A DNA stretch of 64,000 nucleotides from NCBI RefSeq assembly GCF_031769215.1, contig NW_026781945.1, forward strand, positions 806,001-870,000, in the 5' to 3' direction. The stretch comes from Ylistrum balloti (taxonomy: Eukaryota). This document shows, piece by piece, positions 13,012-32,533 of this stretch. A program made the position numbers and the translations under genes. Every line of letters starts with the position of its first letter. Position 1 is the stretch's first letter. Under the pieces are notes generated by a model, which was not told where the DNA came from, ran no database searches, and saw only the letters and a list, made by a program, of their open reading frames with translations.

Positions 13012-15043
13012 GTATGTACAACTGGTGGCTTTTTGGCTTTTATCTTTTCTTGTTTTCTACTTAAATTGTTTATTTTGCTTTGCTTTATGTTATTTGTGGA
13101 GGTAAAATTTATTTGAATGTTATATTTCAACATCTTCTCAATTATTAATTTTTTTTTTTTGTAATTAGCAAAAACCCTTTTCATACATTGTGTATATTTC
13201 TCATCCTCAATTCACATTTTACATTCACTATCTTATGAAGAACGTTAAATCTGCATTTAATGTCGATGTTACAGTCATGCGCGAGCATCAATGAAGGGGA
13301 TTTTGTTTTATTTACTTGATGGTTGTGGTTGCATTATGCGGAAAAACTCGCATATATGCCAAAGCAGATAGTTTTTGTTTCTTTTTACTGTGCCAATATA
13401 GGTATGAACTGATATAACGATTTACATCACCAAATTCATATTGTAATTTCTGGTGAAACCTATAAATTCTTAACACTTTGTAAACTTTTACAAGAATATG
13501 AATATGTAATTAAGCAGTTAAGTAGTTTTTATTCAGGAACTTATATTTTGAAGAAGAAAAAAAACGAAGATAAATATGTAAGTTTCAGTGAAATGAGATA
13601 TGGGTGTTAATCTATGTATATGATTATCTCTATAATTAACGATGTAACTGTAAGAAGAAAAATGCAATACCGTAACTGTATGTTGGCAAGTCGCTTTGGA
13701 ATGCGGAAGTCACTGTGGGGTGAAGGTTAGTCTACACAGATAATTCGTACAGTAGTTGCAGTAGTTGGACATTTGGTTATAATTAGACAAAGCCTTAGAG
13801 ACATCATAATACACAATCATTGTCTGTTTGTATCTATTTTGGGCACTTCCGTGTTTGTCGCCAGCTAAAGTACATATATATCGACATAGTCCCAGTATGC
13901 TTCATTAACATTATGCTACATCAGATGTCAGACGTAATGCATTTGATGGAAGGCAGGACACCCCACAGTCAAAGTGACAAGAAAATGCTATAGAGATATA
14001 CTATATTGTAGGAAAATATCATAAGGTAGAAATGTTTGGAATATTACAGAAATATGTAAAATGAAAGGCATATGTTATAGAATATGGATAAGATTTTGTA
14101 TGAATACATTTTATAAAGATATGTCTTACAAGAGAAACGTGTAATATTGTATGTTTATATAGTATAAAAGTAATATGATATCGATAAAAAAGAATGGTAT
14201 GAGGTTTTTTTTTTTTATATAAAACTCAAACAAGAAAGTGAAGACAACAATATGATGTTGTACTATTTTATCATTGGGATTATGTAATATTATAAAACAA
14301 TGATATGTAATATTCCTTCAGTATGCTGTTTTGATATAATAGTAAAAAAAATATCGGATAAAATCACAAAAAGTGAGACTCAATTTTATCGTTGTGTTAA
14401 TTAATTAAGCTTTAATGAATGTTGTAGTCATAGATTTTATCATAGTATCCTATTTGATGAAAGAGTATTTGTCTAAATTGGATATCACACAGACTTATGT
14501 AATGATGTGGAATTTCTTTGGAATGTTGATGAAACACCGGCTTGAGATGTCTGCATGCTAAGAATTGGCAAGCTGCATATTTCATATCTTCAAGCAGAAT
14601 AGACAAGAAAACGAAGATTTTTTTTCCGACAAAAACATCCGCTTTATGCAATTTTCACATTATTTATCACAGTCTTAGGTATAAATCTTCTTCCATACGC
14701 AATGTTTGCAAAGGGCATATTTTCATGGTAACAAAACGAAGCAAATTTTACGAGTAGAGAATTGCCGTTCATGGTTTCATCAATTGATTGTTATAAGTCT
14801 TCGAGAAAAAAAATTGTCAGGAACCAGGATAAAGATGACATCTCGAGAATAGTGAGAAAAGTTAAAGTATTCACATTTCAGAAACACGATTTTTTGTCGC
14901 TTTTTATTCCTTTCTTGAGTGGAACCTGTCTTTGATGGAAACCTGAGAAGATAAAACAATGATTTTAGAAAAAAAAACAACAAAATTTCGACACATGAAA
15001 TGAAAATAAAACTGGTTTAGATCATCCATTACATTTATGAAAG

Positions 15044-18000
15044 TTATGACAAGACAAAAGTTGAAATGACTATTGTAATATTTTGCAAACTCCAACCAAA
15101 TAACATGTTTCCAATATAGACAGATTCCTGCGACAAACTTTCGAATTCCAGTGTAGCTGCTGAGCTTGAGCTTGTCCATGAGCTAACTTAAACAGAATAA
15201 CTTCCTTATACTGCCATTGTTCATCTTAATTTTGACGTTTTAAAAAGATACAATGATATATCGAGAGAAAGTGTGAGCTATGACAGGAAATGAAGCCTTC
15301 AAAATATACAGGCGATAAGTATAAATCGCCAGTGAAACAAGGGGCAGTATATCGAAGCTGTTGTGCTGTGTAACTGCCTTAACTTTTTATATGTAAACAC
15401 CTACATGAGGCATTTGTTGATGAGTGTGCCCTCATGTACCTGCTGATGCTGCAGTGTGCACTTGGCGATGTCCATCATTTCCTGTTAAGATGGCATCTAT
15501 GTTATGTGCTAAATACACCATACTTGTCAGTTTGTGTTATGTGTATGTTGTTCTAACATGTTTTTCGCATTGTTAGCTTAACGTTGTATTGTATCACTAC
15601 TTAATATGTATTTGTTACAGCAGTATCTCATCACTGGCAGCTGAACATAGTAAAACGTTAGTTTTTTTTACCAAAGAAAGTTCAGATTAACGTTATTCTC
15701 AGGTAAAATTCAATTGTAAGAACATACTTTGTATTGTCGGTTTTTACTTCTGTAACCATGACACTAAAAACTAGCTTAAACAGTACAGTAATATTAATAA
15801 TGTAGTTTAAACGTAAACTTTCATCATCTTGACTTGATCATCACTTGTCCATGTAACCAATGAATAACATCTGGTCTAAATAAAAGATGAAAGAATTGTT
15901 ATCTCTTTATAATGGCAAAGAAGGCATTGTTTCATTACGGATGAAACATGAAGGTTTAACCATCACAGAAAAAAATACCTGCATTGGTGTAGATTTATCC
16001 TATAAAAAGTACTTCTACACTTCAATAGATTTTTAATTGCTGTTAAATTCATTTGTTGATATAATCAAATTACAGTTTTATTGTTTGTAGTGTCTTTTAA
16101 TGTCGTTATTGATTAGTAATGTAAAGTAATGTTGTTATGTATTAGATTTCACTATCCGCTTATTTCTCATACTATATGTATCATCTATCGTTATTTTTTT
16201 ATCATTATTTACTTATACAAATGATGATACATACAATCTAATATCTGAAGTATAAACCTAACTTCTTATCCAACAGACGTGAGGTATGTTACAGTGATAC
16301 CTAATATCTACACTCCTTTTTTACTTTAATGATTCATGCATCTAAAAATAGATTTTAAAGTGTGTTCCCATGATGTTATGCAATAACATTACCTTTGCAC
16401 TGAAAGTATCTGTTCGCAGATTTTCAAATTATAATAAATCATTTTTGGTTTATGGTTTTCTTGGCATATGTACCATGACATCACACGTTCAGCTTCCTAA
16501 ACGTGATATCTGTGAAATTGTTTGAAGTTAAAGGTAGTATAGTTGTTGAGGCCTAAAACATATGTTATAAATTAGAAAAATTCTTAAAGCGGTAACGATA
16601 ATGAATCCGGAATTTAAGCAACTGTTTTTCATATAACGTTTTGTAGCACATGATAGTAATTGATTTGATCATGCCGGTCTATAATGCTTAATAGAAGTAC
16701 TTTAAAACTGACAAATTCCATGATAAACGAGGACATAACATTCAGCTTCGTTAAAAAAACGATATATAATTGAAAAATTTGTAAACTCAAAGAAAAAAAA
16801 ATTCTCTAGACAACTGCTAAGTATTAAGATATACACACTTTACCAAAACCAAGAGGACTTAAATCCATACTTTATATTTGTCTTTAAGTTATGAGATCTT
16901 CTAGATATTGAAACTTACAGGCGGATATCACTTTTATGATTTTATGATATATGTCAGAGTACCTCTCAAATAAAACTGGTTCTTACTTTTTCGCCTTAAA
17001 ATGTAATTCAAAGTTTTGTTTATCGTGTTGCCATTCCTATATCTAAGCATTATAACCCTACAGTCGATACTTTAAATGGCATACATATTTAATAATCGCA
17101 CTAGAAACATCATACTAGGTTGTCAAAGTGGAATCAACAACACTCTGAATAATTTAGATGTTTCCTTAACAGTATCATGTCTTTTCGGTTTAAGCAGTCT
17201 TAGATTCATTCTTGTGTTTAATAGTTTTTGGCCAATATTATTCTAAACAGGACTAATTTCAAGAACTTACTTGAAACTTTTTTTTCAAAATCGTAGTCTT
17301 GCCAAAACTTTTCAAATTTCAAGATTGGAATTTGAAGAACCAGCATGAATTTATATATTCATTTTATACATGTTAGTGTCTGTATGACTCATACCGCGCG
17401 CAATGCAAGCGAAAACACGTATGTACGCCAAGTTCGTATGTAAATATGGCAAAGCAGTAGTGCTGAAGTGAGGATAGGTATATATTGCCTCCTTGACTCG
17501 CCCCCTTTCTCCCTTCTGTCATGTTCCGCGCTATCTTTGATTAACATATCGAAGATGCTACTGCTGTTTGGCTTGAGAAGTTAATTGCTTGTGAGAGTCC
17601 ATTACCTTCGTGGAAACAAGTTCCCGCGGTAGGATCCTCGAGATTGAGGAGAGCGATATGTGTGGAAGGTGTGTTGTATCAGTCTAAGGCCTGACTCGGT
17701 ATATATAATGCAACTGGTCAGTTTTAGATCTCTATCTCTTTAATCTGCTATCAGATATACTACATATGCTTCCACAGTGAAGATGAACTATCTGATTTCA
17801 TTATCTTTATGTAATATCTTTACCGTTCTTTGTACCTGTTATATCCCCCTGTTTGCTGACTAGGCAGCGACTTAGATCTTACAAATACCTCACGCAGCAC
17901 AAACAAGAAAAAAACCTACAGGCCATATTTCGGATTAGTGACTTCTTGAGGCACAATCAAATGCGAGCCATATGTCTATTAGGGAAATAAACAACTGTAT

Positions 18001-19329
18001 CAAAGTGTCGACATAACAACTTGAAATTTGGATAAAAAATTCTTGTTTGTGAAAAAATATCATTTATGTAACGTCATTTCTTGGAGCACAAACGTTGTTG
18101 GCAAGGTGTCTACATAGCCTATGGGTTGCCAATAAATTCTTGCAACTGTGGACGAAAAGTCATCTGCAGCAGATACTTACTTGCACGAGAACTGCACACT
18201 TATAATTGAAGTCGAAACGTTGATGTATTCTAGCTATGCAAGCAATTGCGGTGAAAACGTCAATGAGGAATAAAATTTTCATCCAAAATGAGGACAGTAG
18301 AGAATTATTATAAAGGTTCTAAGCCGAACTATTTCACAATGTGCAACCGTCTGTATACAAAATGTCTTTTTGATTTTTTGATTACTGACAAACACTTGTG
18401 GACAAAGCGTGTACAGGATTATGTTTTATTCGTAATAGGCACAAAAGAAGCCAACAGAGAACTTATATGAAATTCAGTTCGTATCGCATAATTTTTTTTT
18501 CTCATTATAACACATTATAAAAATCAAATTGTCATAGAAATATTTTAATTTCTAGTCTTGTTTACCTTTTTCGGGCGAATTTTGTCATCAATAGTGGTTT
18601 TCATTTAATAAAATGTTAAATTCAGACAATTCGTTCAAGGTTTCATTGATTGCTACCTACTGGATAGAGAATTTCATACAGCAATCGTGTTGATAATCAA
18701 CCAAATTACATTCGTCTTAGCAATGTTTAAAAGTGGCGTACAAGATTGATGAAAACAGACTGTTATCATTCAACAGAGCACCTGTGTTGATTTTATCCTG
18801 TCTCACACCTCTCGTTTGATTGTAATACATTATTTGCCTGTCAGCAACAAAGATGTTTTCAAAGATTAAAATGCCAGTAAGGTGTGACTATTAATAACGA
18901 TTATCCTTAATTTATACAGTATAGTTGTCAATTAACAAAGTTATCGTTTCAATATGTCTAATTAATTTTCTAATTGTAATATCATTTCAATATTTATGTT
19001 GTTTCATTCAATATTTGGATGATTTAATACAACAGCAACCTGCCATATGCTGGTTCTGTGACTTGTAGTGATGCTAAGGGCTTTTTTTAAACTTTGGAAG
19101 AGACCGCGGGAAATCAAAATCGTTCCAAGAAATGTCAAAATGAAATTGCAGAGGTTCAGTGACCCTATAATTCCATAAATGCAATTTTCATAATTCCGAT
19201 AGGAACACTGTCATATACCGAAATATATCGAAATCCACATTTGTTTTCCTCTCGATAATACCGCACACGTTTCGATATGATCTGCACAGCTGAATCATCA
19301 AATCTCAGATGCACTGCTGTTTCTTCAAT
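15044..19329 (-). CDS. Candidate 3' exons of a CUB-like extracellular-domain protein (partial)
   Basis: Exons 19329-19219, 18233-18181 and 15182-15044 have AG/GT boundaries and compatible phases (0/0, 0/2, 2/stop). Product: IEETAVHLRFDDSAVQIISKRVRYYREENKCGFRYISLEYINVSTSIISVQFSCNSWTSSSSAATLEFESLSQESVYIGNMLFGWSLQNITIVISTFVLS*. The pattern L.FDD...C...I.LEY...C..SSSS..TLEF.S resembles CUB strands. Confidence 0.35.
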
Positions 19330-20196
19330 CTAAATACACGGGATGATTGATATAGCGCAATAGGCATCTCTCATACATACAGATAACATGTGTTTGGTAG
19401 GAATAGAGTTACCATATACTTTTCCTGCCACATTTAACATAGTAATCCACTCCTTAAAGCGGCAGATCAAAAACAAATAGAATAATTTTATGCTTAATGT
19501 ACATGCTGACGTTCATCTTAAAGAGTAGATCACAAATAAAAAAAAACTAGTAAAACTGACAGGAAAATTTCAAGCAAAAATTGGCAACGGTAACATCAAT
19601 AAAAGTATGATAAGCTTGTTCAGTTTCATAACTTCCGTAAAAATCTTGCAACAGAACTGTGATTTAAATTTTCTTGTTTGTCTCAGCAATAAGCAAGTGA
19701 TTTAAAAATGTTTACTGCAAAGGCAAATTGTTTCAATTATGAAAAAAACTCAGTATTGTGTACCAAAATCATTTGTGATGAAATCACTAATACCCTACAC
19801 ACGGAAAATGTAATTTGCTTTGAGTCATTTGCTTTTTAGGGAAGCTGGAAAAAGTGTCATTCTTTTTAAATGTGTAAACACCTAAGACGTTTTGTTTAGA
19901 ATACTTACATTGCACAGAATTGTAGAATATAGATGTTAGACTTTATCTATTCATTACACGCGTACTTTCCCGACAATCATAAACTACTGGCAGCAGTTCC
20001 AACACTGCTTTACATCAGATAAAAAGAAATCAAAGGAATATTTACAAAGTGGAGTCTTAGAATGCGGTAACAAAATTACCTGTTGTCGATCATTGGCGTA
20101 AAATATCTGTTACGGTATTCACACAAAATAAAGAAGGAATATAAAATGTTACTACGTTGTACATCGAAAAACTAAATGATTCGGAAATACAAATCA

Positions 20197-20488
20197 AAAG
20201 CAACATGTTGATAGCACCATCTGTTACTAGATCGTATTCAATTAAAGCAACATGTTGATAGCACCATCTGTTACTAGATCGTATACAATTAAAACAACAT
20301 GTTGATAGCACCATCTGTTACTAGATCGTATTCAACTAAAGCAACATGTTGATAGCACCATCTGTTACTAGATCGTATTCAATTAAAGCAACATGTTGAT
20401 AGCACCATCTGTTACTAGATCGTATACAATTAAAGCAACATGTTGATAGCACCATCTGTTACTAGATCGTATTCAATTAAAGCAACAT
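20197..20488. repeat. 47-bp minisatellite B, 6.2 copies
   Basis: Unit AAAGCAACATGTTGATAGCACCATCTGTTACTAGATCGTATTCAATT starts at 20197, 20244, 20291, 20338, 20385 and 20432. It contains the palindrome CAACATGTTG and the E-box CATCTG. Confidence 0.97.
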
Positions 20489-23400
20489 TAGAAAGGCTGG
20501 TTACAAAACAAAAACTAACCCAATAAAATGACCGGCTGACAGTTGAATAAGAGGTTGGATCTTCAAAAAAAAGATATCCTGACTTGTTGTGTTAGTAAGA
20601 ATCTTCTCGGATGGGGTAATTTCGAACTAAAATCGAATTTGCAATTTATGTTGTCCGTGATGTGTTATTCTATTCAATACGTTTTTGCCAAATTTTGAGT
20701 TTCAATACGTTTCAAGAGGACAAAATATCGTTTATTAAGGATTGGGATATGTGTAAGACTTGTACAAAGTTATGGATTTTTTTAAAAACTTTATTGAAAT
20801 ATAACTGGCAGAATATATTTTTGATACATTCGCTAGAGATCATAAAATTTATTTCTTTTCTTGTAGAGCGTCCCTTGTTGTATAAGTGCCTCTTTTGGGT
20901 CTTAATGGCATCATTTGTTGCCTCCTGAGGTCTGATTATTATTTTACAGCGCATTTTGCTTATAGCCTTATATCAAAGATGGTTGTTTTATATTTCAACC
21001 TGACGTCTGTTCCTAAGAAGATATTACATTTAACACTTATCCAATAAGGCTGTTGTCTATACCATTCTGTTCTGAAATATACATAATTAGGTCTACTAAA
21101 CTCTTTCATTTATTCAAAATGTGGTTCAAAGGAAAGTATCTTGATTAGATGTTGCAAAGGAAGTATGGGGATGCCAATAACACTTTATGGTCAGTAATTG
21201 AAGAGTACAACAAAAATCCTAGTCTACATTTTGGAGAGTATCCAAGAGATATGCCAGGAATCAACACATACGTCATTCTGCTACACTGGGTGCCTTTGTG
21301 TTGTAGAAGTTTGAGAATTCTCCCTGCTAGGTAGACTCGATTTAATCACTCGGTCATCACAATACACATGTTTCATTATCACAAGCCCATTTTTTTCAAA
21401 CATTAAGAAAGCAAATGAAGTTGATGTATGAAGTTTGCTATTACAAAATCGCAGAGATCAATGGAAACAAAAGGACATTACACGTCCCTTACTGTTGTAT
21501 TGTATTGGGGTTTTATCTATAGACTAGCATGTAGCATTGCTTTCGCCGAAATCTAAAACTGATCGTAAAGGATAAAATGTCTAAAAGATTGGTCCAGATG
21601 TGCTTGCCTCGAATAAGTTGTTATCAGACACTTCAAATCCTGTACCGAAATAAAGCATTAGACAGTATGGAAAAAACTTAATTTTATAGAAAATAATGCT
21701 AATTCTTAAATTCTAGTTAAACGATATTGTTAAACTAGACTCAAACTTTTTTTATATAATAATTATGTAATTCGCGGCATTACTTCCAAGCTATCCTTCC
21801 TAAAATTACATTATTTTGTTGTTTAGCACAAATAAAAAAATAAATTCTAGTATTTAATGATGTTTCTTAACATTCAAGATTTTTGATATGTTTTCAAATT
21901 ATGGTCAGCCTCCTGAAGAACTTTAGACGTCAAATTATGGTAACTCATATATTAATGCTACATTTCTGTTTCATGCGAAAAAAGTTAGATAAAATATGAT
22001 TAACATCAGTTGTAGTGGAGGCGTACGCATTTATTCTGTAGCAGCACTGATTGTGTTTACAGGAAGAACTACGAAAGAATCATTTTACTTGAATAAATGG
22101 ATTCGAATACACAAGTCATATTTACTTAATTAACTCTGACAGGCATAAAATCAAAACCAAGGCACGCGCAAACAGTATGATTATCCATCCGCGCGCATAA
22201 AACCGTGCAAACTTTACCTCAAACAGACGATACAGTGTATTTCCTTATCTGCTGGTACACGCTTGTTATCGTTGACGTATCGTTTGCGTGTGCAGAAACT
22301 AAGAGATAGTCTCAACTTCTAGGATATCTACTGCACGGGTTATCAGCTATCCAATTATACTCCTGTGGAGTCTTCTTTAATACTATCATACTTTATCTAC
22401 TTTACATAAATAGGATTCATGTGGAGGCTCTTAAGCTTGTTAACATTATATCTAAACATCCTGTTGTGTGACAGAAGCAAAAGAATATTTGTTCCAAACT
22501 ACCAAGTTACACAAAATGGGACAGCATTTGTAAAAGTACTAATTTCCCTAGCGCAAATATGTTTATATAAAAGAGATAACTTCGTCAAGATGTGATTGAT
22601 GTGGACGATTTTACTCAGTGATGAGTTCAATTTTAGAGCCACTAATCGTCATGGATATTGATCCCTATTATCATTTCTTTGTTAATGTGGCTTATGTGAA
22701 AATAGGAAATAGCGCGTTTTAAAAAATCTCTAGAATGATGGTTTCTAAAATATGTAGATTTCTCTTTGAGAATTGTATTTATAAAATATAAGATAAAACC
22801 TGATTCCATATTTCGAGAAAACCTCCAATAGCTTAAAAGAAAAATGATAAATTTACGTCTTTTCTATGTTAAAACTACATAATGGAATATAGTTCACTAA
22901 AAGTATACAATTTATCTTTTGCTTAGGTTATTAGGTTTAAACCTTCTTGAAAACAAATTAAGCATTTCATTAAGAGTCATCATTATAAAAAGCTAGGTTG
23001 TATGATTCTTACCTTAAACCCTGATCATCAGAACAATAAGTCGCATTATCAGTATGACGTAAAATAATTGTTTAAATACAGAACTGTACTAATGTTTACC
23101 AGGCGCAAACAGCAACACAAACATCGATAGAAGTTGATTTATCTGACTACTCCTTATCCATAGCAGAACTATCTGTTAGAGAGAGAGAAATAGACACATC
23201 TATGTAAACAAATATCTATTTTCGCGTCAGCAGAACCATTCGCCCGCTTTATGACTCATACTGAAGTATATAACACAAGGAAACGAGGTCGTGGACAATT
23301 GAGTTCTGTTTTGTAAATATATTTTATATGTCTGCGCTATTTTTAGATATGCACGTACGTTGAGTCATGCAAACGGTATATCGTTTAATGATTGTTCATG

Positions 23401-24118
23401 TAAAGCACGTGCACAATGTATGCTTTCGTAACACACATCTTTCATTATTAACATTTTAGTCATGAATTCTAAGGACTAAATAAATGATAAATTTATCACT
23501 GTTATATAAATAAATTTCTTTGGTCAAAAATAAACTACTTGTGAGGAATAAACCATAACTTTTCTATACAAATTCAATGTAGATACGAACACACAAATTT
23601 GCCAAAAGAATTGACTACATTTGAATGTCTTCTGCCATTTCGTTATCTTGTTGTTCTCGGGTATATAAATATTGACAACATCTGAAATCATACGGTAGTT
23701 ATCCTCAAATTTTAATATCAAATTTGAAAATAAATATTCTGAACTCTTAACAATAATATTAAATCTTTATCAAATAAGATCTCAATAATTTGAATAAATC
23801 TTACTTATTAACATTAACTTTCATTTGATATAGTTATTTGACTTTCCTTTTTCCCAGAATGTTAGTTTTAGTTTCTTGAGTTTTCAATATTTTACAAATA
23901 ATAAGCTACAATTTTTTATACATATTTTATTAAGTAGCAAGTAGAAATTTATAACAGTAAGTAGTAGGAATGTACATTGTTAAATTAATACGCTATTAGT
24001 ATAGTATATACATGTATATGTATGTTTACTAACAATCCACATATTTACAGGTGTGGGAAGGTGTGTCAAATTTTCGGTTTTCTGCATCAGCATCTGATAA
24101 CCCAAAAACTGCTTCAAC

Positions 24119-24181
24119 ATGAGCAACACGAGAGCGCAAAAATCTGGAGCCGCTTGGGGCATTGAAAAGAAAATGGAGGAA
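24119..24181 (+). CDS. Alternative start exon A of the CH gene (MSNTRAQKSGAAWGIEKKMEE)
   Basis: Acceptor ttttctgcatcAG at 24090, in-frame upstream stops, tcaacATG, phase-0 donor GTAAGC at 24182. Confidence 0.88.
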
Positions 24182-27100
24182 GTAAGCGTACTTGTTATCA
24201 TTGTGCTGTTTCATTTTCTTTATTCAGGATAAGAACAAGGTTAAACCGTCAAGATGTCCACACGAGCCAAAAAATCCGGTGTAGCGTATGACATCGAACG
24301 GAAGATGGAGGAAGTAAGAGAAGATCAGTATTAATGATGCGCTTGAAACAAACGGCTGATTAGTGTTCTTCTAGTAACAAGCAGAGATCTGTAACAAGAT
24401 GCAGAAACCTTCGGATTTCGGATATATGTTTTTTTCTAATCGTTCTAATCGAATTATTGTTTCGTTTTAACAGTAAAAGTAATGTGAAGCAAAATTTTTT
24501 TGTGTTGGAAGAACACTAATTACTTGCCATGATATCAGTTATAATATAATGAATGCTTTTTGATATCAAATAGTGATTATGTGTTATATTTGATATATGT
24601 TTCTGTCTGTGTCACATATTGTCACAAAAATTATCTTACACGTGTCAATAGCGAAACATCAACTAGGCGAAACATCACTGAAAAAAATATCACAAAGCGT
24701 TCATTATCATTGTAACCTGATTCTTTTGTAGTGACTGCTCGACCTCGATCTCGGAGGACTGCCAACACTAGAGATGCATGAGTTTGTTCCCCAAAATCAT
24801 TCATACATAACCTGTATATCACGTGTCTCTGTTCACAGTACCCCTTCCCTACTGTTTCATCTTCCAATCATCGTCATCAGCGTCGAGATGTCTTTAAGAT
24901 CTAGTAAGGCGGGCTTTGGTTATGAAGTTCAAAGAAAAATGGAGGCTGTAAGGAAACCTATCAAGTACAATAACGTTGTTTCTAAGACATGCATTTACTC
25001 GATGAAATCACATGAGAATATTATAGTAGATTAGCATGAATCATAACCATTTCAATATGTAGTGTTTATCTAAAAGACCGTTTGTTGATGCCATCTCTTC
25101 GTATGTAGGAAAATTTGTTGGTTTGTAACAAAAAGTAAATATACTCTTTTCTGTTAATTTTTCTGTCCTTACTTTATGAATTTAGGATTTTTTAAAAACT
25201 TGATAGCTCTAAGGTAAATATATAATTTTCAATATTTCACTCTTTGAAGTCTGAGCTGTTTTAAATTAGAAATAAAAACAGATAACGACAAAAAAATCTG
25301 TTTAAATAACAATAGCGATAAAATTGTGAAATCTTATATACGTTTTGTTTAAAACGCTCCACTAATTTTATGCAATAAGCCATGGGAGGTAACTCTTATT
25401 TTCAATTTTTCTATCAACAATGAGGTAATGAATACAGATCGGCTTGTTACCAAATATTTTTTAAAGAATGAAAAATGGATGATCATATAATATCATATAT
25501 CTAGAATAAGAGATGGTATCGCAATACTTATACTTATGAAAATTGTAGATTTTATTTAGACATTCTCTATTATCATAAATGGAGTGATATGCATGATAGA
25601 TCCGTTAGATATTAGAAACAGAATAAAATTATTTACAATGTAGTAAACAAAAACTGGTCTAAGTTTGTAGTTCAAGGCTATTAGCCTTGATGTATGCAAT
25701 CATTTTAAATGCCATTGATGACATTTCCCCCCTTTTTCAGATTTTTTACCTTTCGAATTCCTCTTCAATTTCATTTCAAGTTCAATTTCATTATTGCACT
25801 TACATAGTATCACTTCATCATTTGGATAATATCTTACTCCGTCTTTATATGGACAATATTTAAAGCAACTTCAGTTTTTATTTTGTTAACCATTCTTATT
25901 TCAACGATCATTTGATGGATATCCTTCGCCTACCATTTTCGTAACCATCAATTTTCTACTTTTCTGTTTACTAAGTATGCGCATATGCGACCGCTTCAAC
26001 ACGTAATATATCACCAATCAAAAATATATTTTTTGTTTCAAAGTTTTCTATTTTGTGTTATTGGTTTTAGTTTTCACTCAGAAATAAGGTTTCAAATGAT
26101 CTACACACGACACACGTATTGCATTTTATGAAGCACTCGTCACCTGCCATGCAAGCGCGTACGATCTTTATATATGCACTATATCACCAATTTTACTGCT
26201 CATTTTTCATGTCATGTCATAGACCACCTTTGTTTACTGTGTTTGTCCAATCAGCAATGACCTATTTAAAACGAACCGTGCTTGATGTTTACTAGATATG
26301 GTTCTATAATTTATATTTTAATTGAGACTTCGGAAATCCAATGATAATTCATGGAGTCATCTGTCCCTAAGGCGTTCGTTTTAGATAGGTGAGGGTCAAA
26401 AATATTGTCGTCCTTTTGTTCTTATTGTCCTATTCTGTATTAATTTGTTACATTTATATACGGATACCATAGAATAAAGACATATTAATTAACAAATACT
26501 TTCAATTTGAAACTGATAAAATGAGGTCAAAACTTTGACAACAGAAAGTTTCAAACGAAATCCTTGAAAAAAACATCAGAGGAAGACACCCCTTTGTTCA
26601 ATAACGGCCAGCGAGTCTTACCACATCTACTTTTCTTATACGAGTGCACAGAAAATTTTATTTTCAAAATGTTGGTTAGGAAAAAGGACTATTTGGATAA
26701 CATAAATGAGTGTTTGTGAATTTGAGGTAATGAATGACATAACAAAATCTGTTAACAGCAAAGTAGGATGCATACTACTGTCAACAGGAACTGAAGATTT
26801 TCTGAACATATTTTGCATGAAGAATATAAAAAAAGAAGACGACTATGATTGGTAACAATAGTGTAATATCCTATTAGATAATACATAGTTAATTGTTTTC
26901 AATTTCATATACATATATATCACGGCATCATTTACTATGTATTTAGTCATCCCTGTGTCTTGCACTCATATAATAATGGTCTAGTGTTACTAAAAATTCA
27001 TTATGATTATATCACATATATACTGGAATTTTATATGGATGTGATGGATATTTTGACACTCTGAAAATAATCTGCAAATAATTGATGATTTTTTTTGTTA

Positions 27101-30100
27101 TATAACATGTATTTGAAAGAGTAGAATCAATCTTCTGATACCTATGTTCTACTCAACAGAAATTGACTTAAGAAATTAGCTTTATACTCAAATCCACGAC
27201 TGTCATCTACTGGATTAGTAAATGTGTTTAAGAATACTAACGAATATTGTATTGCCTACGCGGTCATTGTTTAATTATTTAATTTTTTTCGATAATCAAT
27301 TATTTGCAAATTATTTTTTATTTATAAAGATATTATCACAAGTAATGTGTTTATTGCTGTGTTTAACAAGATATGAACATTCGAATTATATATCATATTG
27401 ATCACTGTAACAATAATAACTTCATTTCCATTCGTTTATAAGATGAACGTATAAAAAGAGTAATTCAACAGAACATTGATAATGTTAACATCTATGTTTT
27501 CTCTTGGTTTTCATGATATATCTTTTATACTGAATATTAATTTGATTTTTTTTTCATTTCATTAAGTATCATGTGCTATGATGAATTGATTTTCTATTCC
27601 ATTTTCAGATGTTATGTTTTTTTCACGTTTATAACCAGCAAATGTAATATTGTGTCACATTAAAGTGAATGAATTTTATTATTTCATTGATGCTATGAAA
27701 GATATGCGTATCATGTTGAACTATATTTAAAAGGTAACGTATATGGAATATGTATCACACATTGTGTAAAGTAAAATCTGAGATGCCTTTCTTTCTATAT
27801 GCTTATTAGCAGTAAACATATTTAACTATCTGTTTATTTCAAAGTTTGAAAAAAGGCAATGAAACCAAACGAACTCACTTTGTTTAAGAAGGAGACCAAA
27901 AAATAAGGAGTTCGGTTGTCTAGAACAATTTGACAGTTGCTTTATATGGTCATACCAGAAGTAAACTTTGACTGTTCAGAAATGTGGAAATGTTACTGGT
28001 TATATCTTTCAAGAACAATGCGACAAATGAATGTTCTGGTAAGGAGATATTAAATCAAATCTATAAAAGATGTTCTTGGATGGTTCGTGGTTTGCCAAAC
28101 GTTTAACGAAAATATCACTTTTTACAAACAAAAGGAACGTATAATGGACTTCACTTGAGTTAAGTTGTCATGGTGTCCATTTTTCGCGATGTTGAAACAT
28201 CCCCGAAAATTTGCTTTTCGTCCTTTTGTGTACAGAACTATGACAGAGAGGAAGCACAAGGTACTCCTAAGCACATCAGAGAATGGATTAACAGTGTGAT
28301 GGCTAATGACCCTAACTACACAAAATGCGTAAGTATTTCACTGTATTAATGTATTGTTTTTGTTACAATCATTTCTTTTGATTTTAATTCCTCGTGTCCA
28401 ATATGTCTCCATTAGTTATAAACTGAAGCTGACAATCTTTGAAGACTACAGGAGCAAACCAATTGCAAAAATCTTAAACATTTCAATTCATCAAAAAGGA
28501 ATATTTTGTACATATTATCATCTGCTTATGCTTTTGCTTTTGTTTGTATTGTGTTATATGCTTAAGGAACTTTTCTGTAATGATACAACTAATATCAAAA
28601 CTATCATAAAGCTCCAAAACTTTATCAACCGACACTATACGGTTGTATCCTTTGCTAATATTGACTTATAGAAACAAGATATATCTTAAACGTATGTTGA
28701 CGTATATTTTGTCTCATCAGTTTTGATTATCTCTCAAAGTAGTGACTAAAATTGCACAGAACATTTGACATGCACATCTAATTGAATAACAGGTGTATAA
28801 TACACTCGCTATTGATATATGACGTCACAGAATCGATGTGAATATAGAATTTATTCGTACGAACATCCGTGACGTCACTAAGGACGTCGGTTTCCTTTGC
28901 TTGAATTCGCTAGGTTGACAAAAATATATACAAAAATAGATGAATAAATAGATATTTGAATAAACAAACCAATACCATCAAAAAGTCTATATACAGAACA
29001 AACTCAAAAAAATTCAAAATCAATTTGATATTTTGCATTTACTTATCAATTATGCTAAACATTTTGCATATTTTTTTCATGAAACTAACTCTTAATTCTA
29101 ATTTATAACAATTATGAGGTATATGTTACCTAATGATTATTATATAAAAAGCTGTCTTTGAATAAAAATCCAAACCCTACTGTTTTATCTGTTTTATGTT
29201 TATTGTATGACGATCTATCCACAGAAACTATATTATAGTGGAGAAACATGAGCGCCAGTGGTGCCGATTTACAGGTATACATGGTTTGATCAGAACGCCA
29301 CCAGAGTGCATTTTCGAACACCACCATTTTCCAATATTTTATCTCCATGTGATGCCCCGAAATCTCATTCCAGACCAAACACCTATTGTAGATGCTTGCG
29401 GAATCAATGGTACGCCATTTGTGGTCTCTTGAAAATGCGTGAAAATCTCACTGATCCTTTCGTTATTATTCATTCCTGAAGCCTTAAAGTCTCATTTCAT
29501 ATATTTTTTTTTTTTAATATCTGCAACGAATCAGCACCAGAACAAACTATAGTTTTTAATTTGGGTTAATCCTACTCTAAATTTGTACCGAAAAGAACTG
29601 ATATAATGTGTGTCGTTCCGTGCAATAATTGGAATTTTCAAAGATGTTTTCAATGTCATTTCCCTTGAACACAATGGCGTGCGGTTACATTCCAGTCTCC
29701 TTCACAAAAATATCCTCCAAATCCTTACAATGACGATAGGGAAAATACCTACCTTCCCTCCATCTAACCTGTGAAAAAAGTGATATATGTTCAGCAAAGA
29801 AATTCACGCGTGGCCAATTAAAAATGTTGTCAATCTTTAAAACTTCAAAGATTTGTTTACAAAAACATTTGAAACAAAAATAGATAGTGTATTAATTTCT
29901 ATAGCAAGATATTTACGGTAACGTATAAAATATTCCATGCAATGAATGTGATTACATATATGCTTGCCAGCTACCTGTTCATCAATTGATTGATCGTATC
30001 ATTTAAATGTTTGAACTTTTTAATTTGAGTGAATCCTGATTTTTTTCAGTGAAAAAAATCCCGGTATCATCAAGATTTTATGCATTTTATACTGCCACTC

Positions 30101-32533
30101 TTTTATATAAGAATCGAAACCAGGAGTTAAATGCCTGTTCCAATTTGCAAACTTTGAAAAAGTAGATACTTAGGTATGTCAAAATGAACTTTCCACTTGA
30201 AATATTGTCAAATTTCCATAGTGCAAAATAATCAAAATAGGCCTCATTTTAAAAGAAGTTGAAATTCAAAATTCACAGAAGCAGGCATACTCCTTCCATC
30301 TTTATTTTAATTTGATTTAAATTGTTTACAATGTGTAATCTAAACACCATTTTTTATAAACCCGAGTATATATATCAACCCCATAGTACTAACCGCCTGG
30401 AGAATCCCACCCTTCCTCACCTTATGTCCTCTGATCTTTTTATTTTAGGGTGACACTGACTGGAAAGGCTTTTGCACCTTTTTAAGAGACGGTGTTGTTC
30501 TATGCAAGTAAGTCACGTAAATCTATAAAGTAACAGGCCTCTTTCTCTCGTTATGCATGCCTTCTTTAACATTAACTCCTAACTAATAGTTTCCATAATA
30601 AAATCACCTCTCCGACATTTCATCAGCTCCATGATAAATTTAAAAGTCACAAACAATTTTGAAACTGTTTTCCTATAGTCAATGTAAAGAATTATCTTAA
30701 GGACAATGGAATGTGATTGATTTGTAGGACAAACTATTTATCTTTGGTTCCCAGTTCAAACACTTTGCAGTGTAATATAACGGTCCGTCTTCTAATATAA
30801 CGTTGCATTCTGACATTTTAATACATATTTTGATATTTCTGCACATGTGTTCTATGTATTTTTTTATGCCTTTCATTGTATTCTGAACCAGATTAATTCA
30901 AAAGTACGTTAACAGAGTTACAACAAATACTAAAGAAATATTATGACCATGGAACTATCTAAATGTGTTTGTCATTCTAGATCTTGTGGAAAATATCAAC
31001 GTCGGAAATAAAATAGTAACCTATCCTTGTTTTGCATACCATCTTGCTTTGAAAAATGATGATTCATGCAGGCACAGGTTGTCTGGACATATCACGTTAC
31101 AATGTCGTAGATCTATGACATTGTATTTTGTCTTGGTTCAAGTTCAAAAGTATCACTGATTGTGCTTCACCTGCTGTTTGTATAACGTATTCGAGCTTTC
31201 ATCGTTCTTTATTAAAGTGATTGATATTGTAACAGCTCTTTTATCGTTTCCATTGACGAAATATCGACATATAAGGTCATTTGATAATTTTTGATTATCG
31301 TATACTTTAATATTATGAAGTAAATGTCTAAACATTGAATTTTGTGAAACATCATTACTTCCCGAAGTAGTAAAAGAAAAATAAGAAAGAAAAAAACTTG
31401 TTTCCTGTGTATATCCTCCATTTGGTCTTCGGTAAACATCAAATCTGACAACCTTTCTCGCCAAAATGTAATCAGCTGTTTTTACAATTTCATCATTTGT
31501 CGCGTTAATCCGTCGGTGCGTACAATTGTTATTCATAGTACAAGTGATTATAAGATTTGTTTCTTTGATGTTGCATATAGATGCGTATACTGCAATTTGA
31601 AAACAGAAATTTCAACACAACACGGCATCACGCTTCATTTAAAATATCTGTAGAAACAAGAAACAAAAAACGAATTCTCAAATATGATCATATGACATTT
31701 TGATTCGATTTTGATTTTAGGTTCCTCAACGTTTTATTGGCAAGCGATGACAAACCCAAAGTATCGTTCACTAAGAAGGTCGCAAACAGCTTCGCTGCAA
31801 TGACAAACATCGAAAACTTCAACAAAGGATGTGAAACATACGGTCTTGCCAGGGAGTTCTCCTTTCAGAGCGGAGACTTATGGGAATTACGCAAAGGGCC
31901 ATTCTACAACGTCATTAACTGCCTACACAGCTTAGGTTTCACGGTAAAATGGCATTAATATTTTTGTTCTATTATATATAATATTATATTCCATATTTAA
32001 CAATATTACACGTACATAATTTATATATAGTAATCTAACAGATTTAGTAGTAATCTGACTGAAACGGTAAGTGATTCTATCTCCGAAATTAGAAATTAAA
32101 GTAAACATATATGTACTAGACTTCTGAAATGATTATATATATCTAATTATAAAAATAATGGGATTAGTACATCCTCCCATCTAGAATTTCACTTTTCTTC
32201 CGATCACTTAAAATTTTCTTCAATCGCTTCTTAGGTTTCTAGGTTTCAAATTTTATGCCAGTAGCACCACTGCCGAGTCTTGGAAGGACGAAAATCTGTA
32301 TTGATGTATATGTGGCTCTACTATATCTGATTCTGAATTTGTATTCAAATGTGTTATTCATTTGTATATCTGTTTAAAACACATTTCAAACTATTGTTAC
32401 ATACTATATTTTTCCTACGTCATACATCATAAACAAAACAATGAAGTCTAATGTTTATGTTTTCCAGGCCAATTCCAAATCCTTTTGTCCAGCATATAGC
32501 GGGGAAGTAACCAAATATATGGACAGGGATTAA
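24119..32533 (+). CDS. Calponin-homology domain protein, transgelin/myophilin/Mp20-like, 166-167 aa, with three alternative N-terminal exons
   Basis: An alternative ATG exon (24119-24181, 24254-24313 or 24888-24947) joins shared exons 28236-28328, 30449-30507, 31721-31943 and 32468-32533; all are GT-AG and in phase. Shared part: NYDREEAQGTPKHIREWINSV..GFCTFLRDGVVLCKFLNVL..FAAMTNIENFNKGCETYGL..FQSGDLWE..VINCLHSLGFTANSK..RD*. These are type-3 CH domain hallmarks (IREWI, LRDGVVLC, NIENF, FQ..DL.E, V..CL.SLG). Confidence 0.93.
24254..24313 (+). CDS. Alternative start exon B of the CH gene (MSTRAKKSGVAYDIERKMEE)
   Basis: Acceptor ttttctttattcAG at 24227, in-frame upstream TAA, tcaagATG, phase-0 donor GTAAGA at 24314. 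Confidence 0.88.
24888..24947 (+). CDS. Alternative start exon C of the CH gene (MSLRSSKAGFGYEVQRKMEA)
   Basis: Acceptor tcgtcatcAG at 24880, tcgagATG, phase-0 donor GTAAGG at 24948. Closest of the three to the canonical transgelin N-terminus (G...EVQ.K). Confidence 0.88.

Follow-up and report, generated by a model that had tools for sequence, protein, structure and literature searches.

The DNA considered here is a stretch of 64,000 nucleotides from the scallop Ylistrum balloti (RefSeq assembly GCF_031769215.1, contig NW_026781945.1, positions 806,001 to 870,000 of the forward strand), referred to below as the window and numbered from its first letter; it contains zero N runs. It carries a gene for a small transgelin-like protein whose start codon is supplied by a cassette of three variant exons, 1a, 1b and 1c. 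These are paralogous exons of 20-21 codons, each initiated by its own ATG and each ending in phase 0 at a GTAAG donor, and they are followed by the constitutive exons of the gene. The features of the gene are these:

12861-13011, + strand, non-coding exon 0 (5' untranslated region, 5' UTR), 5' end uncertain; about 85% identity to the 5' UTR of six Argopecten irradians transcripts
13012-24050, + strand, intron 0, about 11 kb, placed by A. irradians transcript alignment and by conservation
24051-24181, + strand, variant exon 1a (probable start), coding sequence 24119-24181, 21 codons (63 nt); peptide MSNTRAQKSGAAWGIEKKMEE; donor GTAAGC
24182-24227, + strand, 1a/1b intron, 46 nt; 76% of positions invariant in three scallop genera
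24228-24313, + strand, variant exon 1b with a 26-nt leader, coding sequence 24254-24313, 20 codons (60 nt); peptide MSTRAKKSGVAYDIERKMEE; donor GTAAGA
24314-24838, + strand, 1b/1c intron, with predicted stems I and II; conserved block of about 200 nt at 24690-24887
24839-24947, + strand, variant exon 1c (candidate start), coding sequence 24888-24947, 20 codons (60 nt); peptide MSLRSSKAGFGYEVQRKMEA; donor GTAAGG
28236-28328, + strand, constitutive exon 2, phase 0; RefSeq-matching model
30449-30507, + strand, constitutive exon 3; RefSeq-matching model
31721-31943, + strand, constitutive exon 4, CH domain core; RefSeq-matching model
32468-32533, + strand, last exon, coding part with stop codon; RefSeq-matching model

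The variant exons and the protein they begin

The paralogy of the three variant exons exceeds chance. The copies match each other by tblastn within the window with E values of 1e-5 (1a/1b) and 1.2e-4 (1b/1c), and a profile made from 39 bivalve and gastropod N-termini finds exactly three matches in the window, namely 1a, 1b and 1c at 41-48 bits. The next best profile score is 6 bits, and the same search finds no fourth or decayed copy in the 64 kb. As is expected of a tandem-duplicated exon cluster, the three are of like length (63, 60 and 60 nt) and all run from phase 0 to phase 0; their ATGs share the context TC(A/G)A(C/G)ATG, and a conserved polypyrimidine tract with an AG lies ahead of each exon.

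Exon models were found by a search over GT/AG boundaries, one model for each isoform. Each variant exon joined to 28236-28328, 30449-30507, 31721-31943 and 32468-32533 gives a protein identical at all 166-167 residues to a RefSeq isoform. The matching records are the transgelin-3-like isoforms X1, X2 and X3 of Y. balloti (XP_060086373.1, XP_060086374.1 and XP_060086375.1), which have identical residues from exon 2 on. Similarity to A. irradians transcripts extends the 3' UTR to at least about 33329, and exon 4 used as query against 1.8 billion representative proteins has as its best match a 169-residue scallop protein with 86% identity over that exon. In the RefSeq sets of more than ten bivalve species besides Y. 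balloti the differences between isoforms at this end of the protein are likewise confined to the first 16-22 residues. An earlier note on this DNA had described three paralogous exons of about 20 codons with the shared ATG context, phase-0 GTAAG donors joining a single exon at 28236, and three isoforms differing only in their N-terminal segment; the tblastn and profile matches, the spliced translations, and the RefSeq models of Y. balloti and the other bivalves bear this description out.

The acceptors that it proposed were correct in part. The site of 1b is fixed by the exon 0-to-1b junction of A. irradians transcripts, which places the start of the exon at 24228 after ...ttattcag. For 1a the earlier note had used the AG at 24089-24090 (exon start 24091), where A. 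irradians has CCG; four scallops share the AG at 24049-24050 without change, and in Y. balloti a TACTAAC branch-point motif precedes it. Since the upstream AG is invariant and the downstream one is lost in A. irradians, the conserved start of exon 1a is probably 24051. There are two candidates for 1c, the AGs at 24837-24838 (start 24839) and 24879-24880 (start 24881), both invariant in the four scallops; the oyster Crassostrea gigas uses a distal site for its 1C, 61 nt ahead of the ATG.

All three isoforms contain a CH domain by Pfam (PF00307, 46 bits against a cut-off of 26), and the single exons searched by themselves give a CH match that at 17.8 bits does not reach the cut-off. About 20 residues follow this domain in the protein, and the Pfam search detected no calponin-like (CLIK) repeat, PF00402, but only CH and one noise match at E up to 1. 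A type-3 CH domain and an N-terminal extension are common to the scallop protein and to vertebrate transgelin (SM22) and calponin, and the vertebrate family differs from the scallop protein in the calponin-like repeat. On its sequence the scallop protein appears to be best named CH-only and transgelin-like; the calponin/transgelin-like protein of the earlier note thus holds for the CH domain and the N-terminal extension and not for the repeat. The best Foldseek matches are the CH domains of calponin-2, transgelin, IQGAP/Rng2 and calponin-1, and the best sequence matches in the PDB are transgelin-2 (1wym), the Vav-3 CH domain (2d86), transgelin (1ujo) and calponin-1 (1wyp). A K-x-E-x-x-Y-D motif of the N-terminal extension is seen in the phmmer alignment to human transgelin-2 (1wym), which runs from residue 17 (KMEENYD/KIEKQYD). 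In an AlphaFold model with a predicted local distance difference test (pLDDT) score of 89.7, residues 1-9 are disordered and residues 10-27 are helical, so that the variable exon is predicted to encode a head that is basic and disordered, together with the first half of the N-terminal helix before the CH domain.

Internal exons or alternative first exons

Transcripts of orthologs were taken from Logan, which consists of assemblies of public RNA sequencing (RNA-seq) runs. In six A. irradians contigs (L001-L006), all of the B isoform, the 5' UTR maps to window positions 12861-13011 and then 24227-24313, and the transcripts run from exon 0 through 1b to exon 2; in Y. balloti the exon 0 donor GTATGT begins at 13012. 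The C. gigas set comprises the genome locus and 14 transcript contigs. Here there is a single non-coding exon 0, which ends in ...CCTCAT before the donor GTAAGT; splicing connects it with the acceptors of 1A (L019, L021, L022, L012), 1B (L015) and 1C (L016), and each variant's donor is in turn spliced to one common exon 2. All three C. gigas isoforms are represented by Logan contigs (listed on 62, 21 and 4 contigs). Because every variant's acceptor is joined in orthologs to a common exon 0, 1a, 1b and 1c are taken to be internal, mutually exclusive exons lying between shared exons and not the first exons of three promoters, a reading to which we assign a probability of about 85%. The common flanking exons are observed directly in the orthologs, and for Y. 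balloti they follow from the homology of exon 0 and from the RefSeq models. The earlier note had likewise regarded the exons as internal, each with its own acceptor.

The alternative that survives best, although it is unlikely, is that each variant is a first exon with a promoter of its own, the isoform being chosen at transcription. It draws on the approximately 200 nt ahead of 1c, where 79% of positions are invariant across three scallop genera and a CACGTG motif occurs, and on several C. gigas contigs: two start upstream of the 1C acceptor, within exon 1B (L013) or within the 1B/1C intron (L014), and one (L007) joins 1B to a second upstream exon (L018 8815-9040). These features have to be set against the splicing of exon 0 to every variant acceptor in C. 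gigas and to 1b in the six A. irradians transcripts, against the conserved polypyrimidine tract and AG ahead of every variant, and against the 46 nt between 1a and 1b, which leave no space for a separate promoter.

Exon 0 has some features of its own. It includes an upstream open reading frame (uORF) of 7 codons at 12933-12956 (MSRPLVL, then stop) that is present also in the A. irradians transcripts with two residue changes and may be a conserved brake on translation. At the Pecten and Mizuhopecten loci exon 0 was not found within the 10 kb upstream, and it is therefore located further off in these genera. Upstream of exon 0 in the window lies a tandem array (9073-9359) of a 47-bp unit in 6.1 copies with 97% matches. 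Within intron 0, about 750 nt ahead of the cassette, a block of 100 nt (23280-23379) is about 80% invariant in three scallop genera, compared to about 0.35 around it.

Conservation of the cassette in bivalves

Three copies with intact ATG and GTAAG are found in Y. balloti, A. irradians, Pecten maximus, Mizuhopecten yessoensis, C. gigas and the unionid Sinanodonta woodiana, and the protobranch Solemya velum has four. The gastropods Pomacea and Patella have one copy each by a profile search within 10 kb either side of the gene. Among RefSeq sets, three isoforms are present also in Argopecten, Mizuhopecten, Pecten, three Crassostrea species, two Saccostrea species and Ostrea, as well as in Mytilus, Mercenaria, Dreissena, Ruditapes and Mya. 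By these comparisons the cassette is conserved in all bivalves checked. Deposited annotation does not always follow it: only one of the three Sinanodonta copies is annotated, the two start exons that were missed being intact (L026 9826-9894 and 12212-12271), and the deposited 120-residue protein model of Solemya (L028) is incomplete. The Solemya cluster lies within 8571-10060, with tandem ATGs at 8571, 8715, 9039 and 10001, and the gene has two alternative last exons (19434-19703). The C-terminal exon is swapped too in Mytilus, Mercenaria, Ruditapes, Mya and Dreissena, where 2-3 versions give up to 6 or more isoforms. Scallops and oysters have one version of the C-terminus, and no second, alternative last exon of the kind found in mussels, clams and Solemya is present in the 64-kb window.

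Of the exons of oyster, mussel and Solemya it is in each case the 3'-most that matches the 3'-most scallop exon with the highest score, and because of this match at least the 3'-most exon type is older than the bivalve crown group. The origin by tandem duplication that the earlier note had proposed fits both the paralogy of the exons and their conserved order.

Constraint on the variant exons is strong. Between scallop genera the proportion of synonymous sites that differ (pS) is 0.11-0.17 in the variant exons versus 0.42-0.50 in the constitutive exons, and that of nonsynonymous sites (pN) is 0.035-0.055 versus 0.12-0.14, with Fisher p from 4e-5 to 7e-3; across the single variant exons pN is 0.02-0.10. 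None of the three is decaying, and to judge from these divergences they are the most constrained part of the gene, also at the RNA level. The earlier note had suggested a comparison of the three peptides among molluscs together with a selection test, and had named decay or loss of the exons in related species as an outcome that would speak against it. What is found is a set of copies conserved in bivalves, three of them intact in scallops, oyster and unionid, with strong constraint on all three.

This evidence also bears on the explanation that one exon is functional in Y. balloti and that the other two are relics of duplication turned into isoforms by a gene predictor. No Logan contigs encoding the exact Y. 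balloti proteins were found, and in A. irradians there are Logan contigs for the B isoform only, both of which such an explanation would lead one to expect. It is nevertheless very improbable in view of the intact ATG, frame and GTAAG donor of all three exons in four scallop genera, the low pN and a synonymous change about 1/4 of that in the rest of the gene, the transcription of all three variants in C. gigas, and a 3'-most exon type that is recognisable in scallops, oyster, mussel and Solemya. The further explanation that each start exon belongs to a separate downstream gene copy, which the earlier note had itself listed as a possible refutation, deserves almost no credit, since no direct support for it was found beyond an A. 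irradians paralog (P0007) elsewhere on the same chromosome, exons 2-5 are single copy in the window (tblastn with six homologs), and the three RefSeq isoforms do not differ from exon 2 onward.

Exon choice and its significance

We infer that exclusivity is maintained in the following way. Transcription of the single-copy gene would begin at the shared non-coding exon 0, about 11 kb upstream, and exon 0 would be spliced to one of 1a, 1b and 1c, the chosen exon bringing the start codon and the first 20-21 residues; its joining in phase 0 to exon 2 would give three proteins that differ only at the N-terminus. Exon 1a would not be joinable to 1b, the 46-nt intron between them being too short. An mRNA that retained an intron, or in which 1a or 1b was joined to 1c, would suffer a frameshift and an early stop, the double-variant mRNAs on account of leader lengths of 26 nt (1b) and 49 or 7 nt (1c). 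Two conserved stems would fold the 1b/1c intron and probably tune the choice of exon, and the isoforms would probably adjust actin or partner binding across muscle or cell types.

The frame traps can be read from the exons themselves. Double inclusion by way of the 1b acceptor or the 24839 acceptor of 1c leaves open reading frames of 39-42 amino acids, and retention of the inter-variant introns leaves 26-37; with the 24881 acceptor the frame is shifted by the 7-nt leader and runs into a stop eight codons inside exon 1c. If all three variants are skipped, a proper start codon is missing. Among the 20 Logan transcript contigs there is none in which two variants are spliced together. The intron homologous to the 1a/1b intron is 46 nt long in A. 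irradians and P. maximus, 47 in M. yessoensis and 48 in C. gigas, and that between the first two copies is 42 nt (predicted) in Solemya. Its three-way invariance in scallops is 0.76, and that of the 200 nt ahead of 1c is 0.79, compared to about 0.3-0.36 in ordinary intron.

The two stems within the 1b/1c intron were found by RNAalifold. The arms of stem I are 24357-24374 and 24505-24522, those of stem II 24539-24566 and 24687-24715. Single-species folds of all four species show both stems again, with varying loop lengths between the arms; 95% of cells pair in both, compared to 27-54% on sliding the partner by 1-3 columns, and changes on both sides are found in five pairs. Conservation of the stems is on this four-species alignment suggestive. 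A search of Rfam families over 22800-25800 gave one noise match only (E 0.86), and the conserved intron blocks are therefore not a known small nucleolar RNA or microRNA. An 8-bp helix of 24339-24346 with the AG at 24880 is too short to rely on. The end of 1a (24166-24175) is complementary over 10 bp to the polypyrimidine tract of 1b (24212-24221), and this match is conserved in three scallops; such pairing could mask the 1b acceptor or could be mere base composition, and it was not relied on because purine-rich coding sequence can match a pyrimidine tract by composition.

A number of points weigh against the reading of 1a, 1b and 1c as internal, mutually exclusive exons governed in this way. 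In Y. balloti the use of all three exons and of exon 0 is indicated by RefSeq models and by orthologs, and the acceptor positions of 1a and 1c are candidates drawn from conservation rather than anchored by transcripts. Exclusivity at the RNA level is not absolute, because in the region L018 9963-10619 four C. gigas contigs retain introns between variants, using the donor of 1B (L010) or of 1C (L012, L013, L015). Because L007 joins 1B to a different upstream exon, some coupling of exon choice to promoter choice is possible; it may be that this contig and the intron-retaining ones are intermediates of splicing, or by-products laden with uORFs. In Sinanodonta an intron of 82 nt separates the first two copies, and a steric block is therefore not universal. 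Stems I and II do not compete with each other, both lying within one intron, and functional differences between the isoforms are pure conjecture.

Two well known arrangements of exclusive exons invite comparison. Smith and Nadal-Ginard reportedly showed in 1989 that exons 2 and 3 of alpha-tropomyosin are exclusive on account of a branch point too near the upstream donor. Like these, 1a and 1b are adjacent alternatives across an intron (46 nt) that would be too short to splice, but the scallop cassette has a third exon 567 nt further on and its variants carry the start codon. In insect exon clusters such as Dscam exon 6 and 14-3-3 xi the choice is made by RNA pairing between a docking site and selectors. 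The scallop cassette resembles these in that its clustered, duplicated exons are accompanied by conserved RNA duplexes in an intron. Unlike them, it was found on searching to lack a single element complementary to a site by each variant (no conserved helices of the docking-site/selector kind over 4.4 kb in three species), and its two stems can form together in one intron.

Bivalves and gastropods separated more than 500 million years ago. After this split, the bivalve ancestor might have acquired the cassette as a splicing switch in which an unspliceable intron of 42-48 nt and the stems hard-wire the choice and the N-termini set actin or partner preference by muscle. This is a tentative proposal and more doubtful than the internal position of the exons. 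If true, the three N-termini would lend the protein differing preferences for actin structures or partners in catch muscle, striated muscle and the attachment of muscle to shell.

That the N-terminus tunes actin or partner binding is itself a conjecture. The ortholog TLP-1 (transgelin-like protein 1) of Mytilus coruscus binds actin with a dissociation constant (KD) of 9.45 uM by biolayer interferometry, is highest in adductor muscle and is present in the myostracum (PMC7530383). The Mytilus proteins TLP-1 to TLP-7 (PMC4517812, PMC7530383) are orthologous CH-only proteins of about 19 kDa, and the deposited TLP-1, -2, -4 and -6 are identical to RefSeq isoforms of one Mytilus gene or fall within their 90% cluster. 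The Mytilus gene differs in swapping the C-terminal exon too (3 x 2 isoforms), the scallop window having a single last exon. The proteome of Mytilus shell and myostracum lists the TLPs as separate proteins and never mentions splicing (PMC4517812), nor does the TLP-1 paper (PMC7530383). Alternative N-terminal exons are unmentioned in a 2023 review of the calponin-transgelin family (PMC10285543), and a study of scallop fast and slow muscle does not cover the cassette.

The RefSeq isoforms X1-X3 of Y. balloti and the isoform sets of other bivalves represent the same gene with the same three N-termini as the cassette in the window, but these records are models only and are silent on the exon cassette, its working and its age. 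No description of the start-exon cassette was found in a literature search. The isoforms are thus already public as gene models, and the cassette itself appears, as far as found, to be undescribed in the literature; the earlier note, which knew of no such description, was in this respect right about the literature and not about the databases.

As an ordinary type of alternative splicing, the cassette leaves the general view of splicing and of the protein family unchanged, and its relevance is mainly for research on bivalve muscle and shell proteins and as a compact model of exon choice. Some of the bivalve "transgelin-like proteins 1-7" of shell and muscle are splice isoforms of a single gene; these were not distinguished by earlier probes, antibodies and knock-downs. 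The cassette would represent a compact, very old and strongly constrained set of mutually exclusive exons that carry the start codon, with a candidate mechanism built in (the 46-nt intron, the frame traps and the conserved stems), and it may serve as a natural experiment on how the segment ahead of a single CH domain tunes actin binding.

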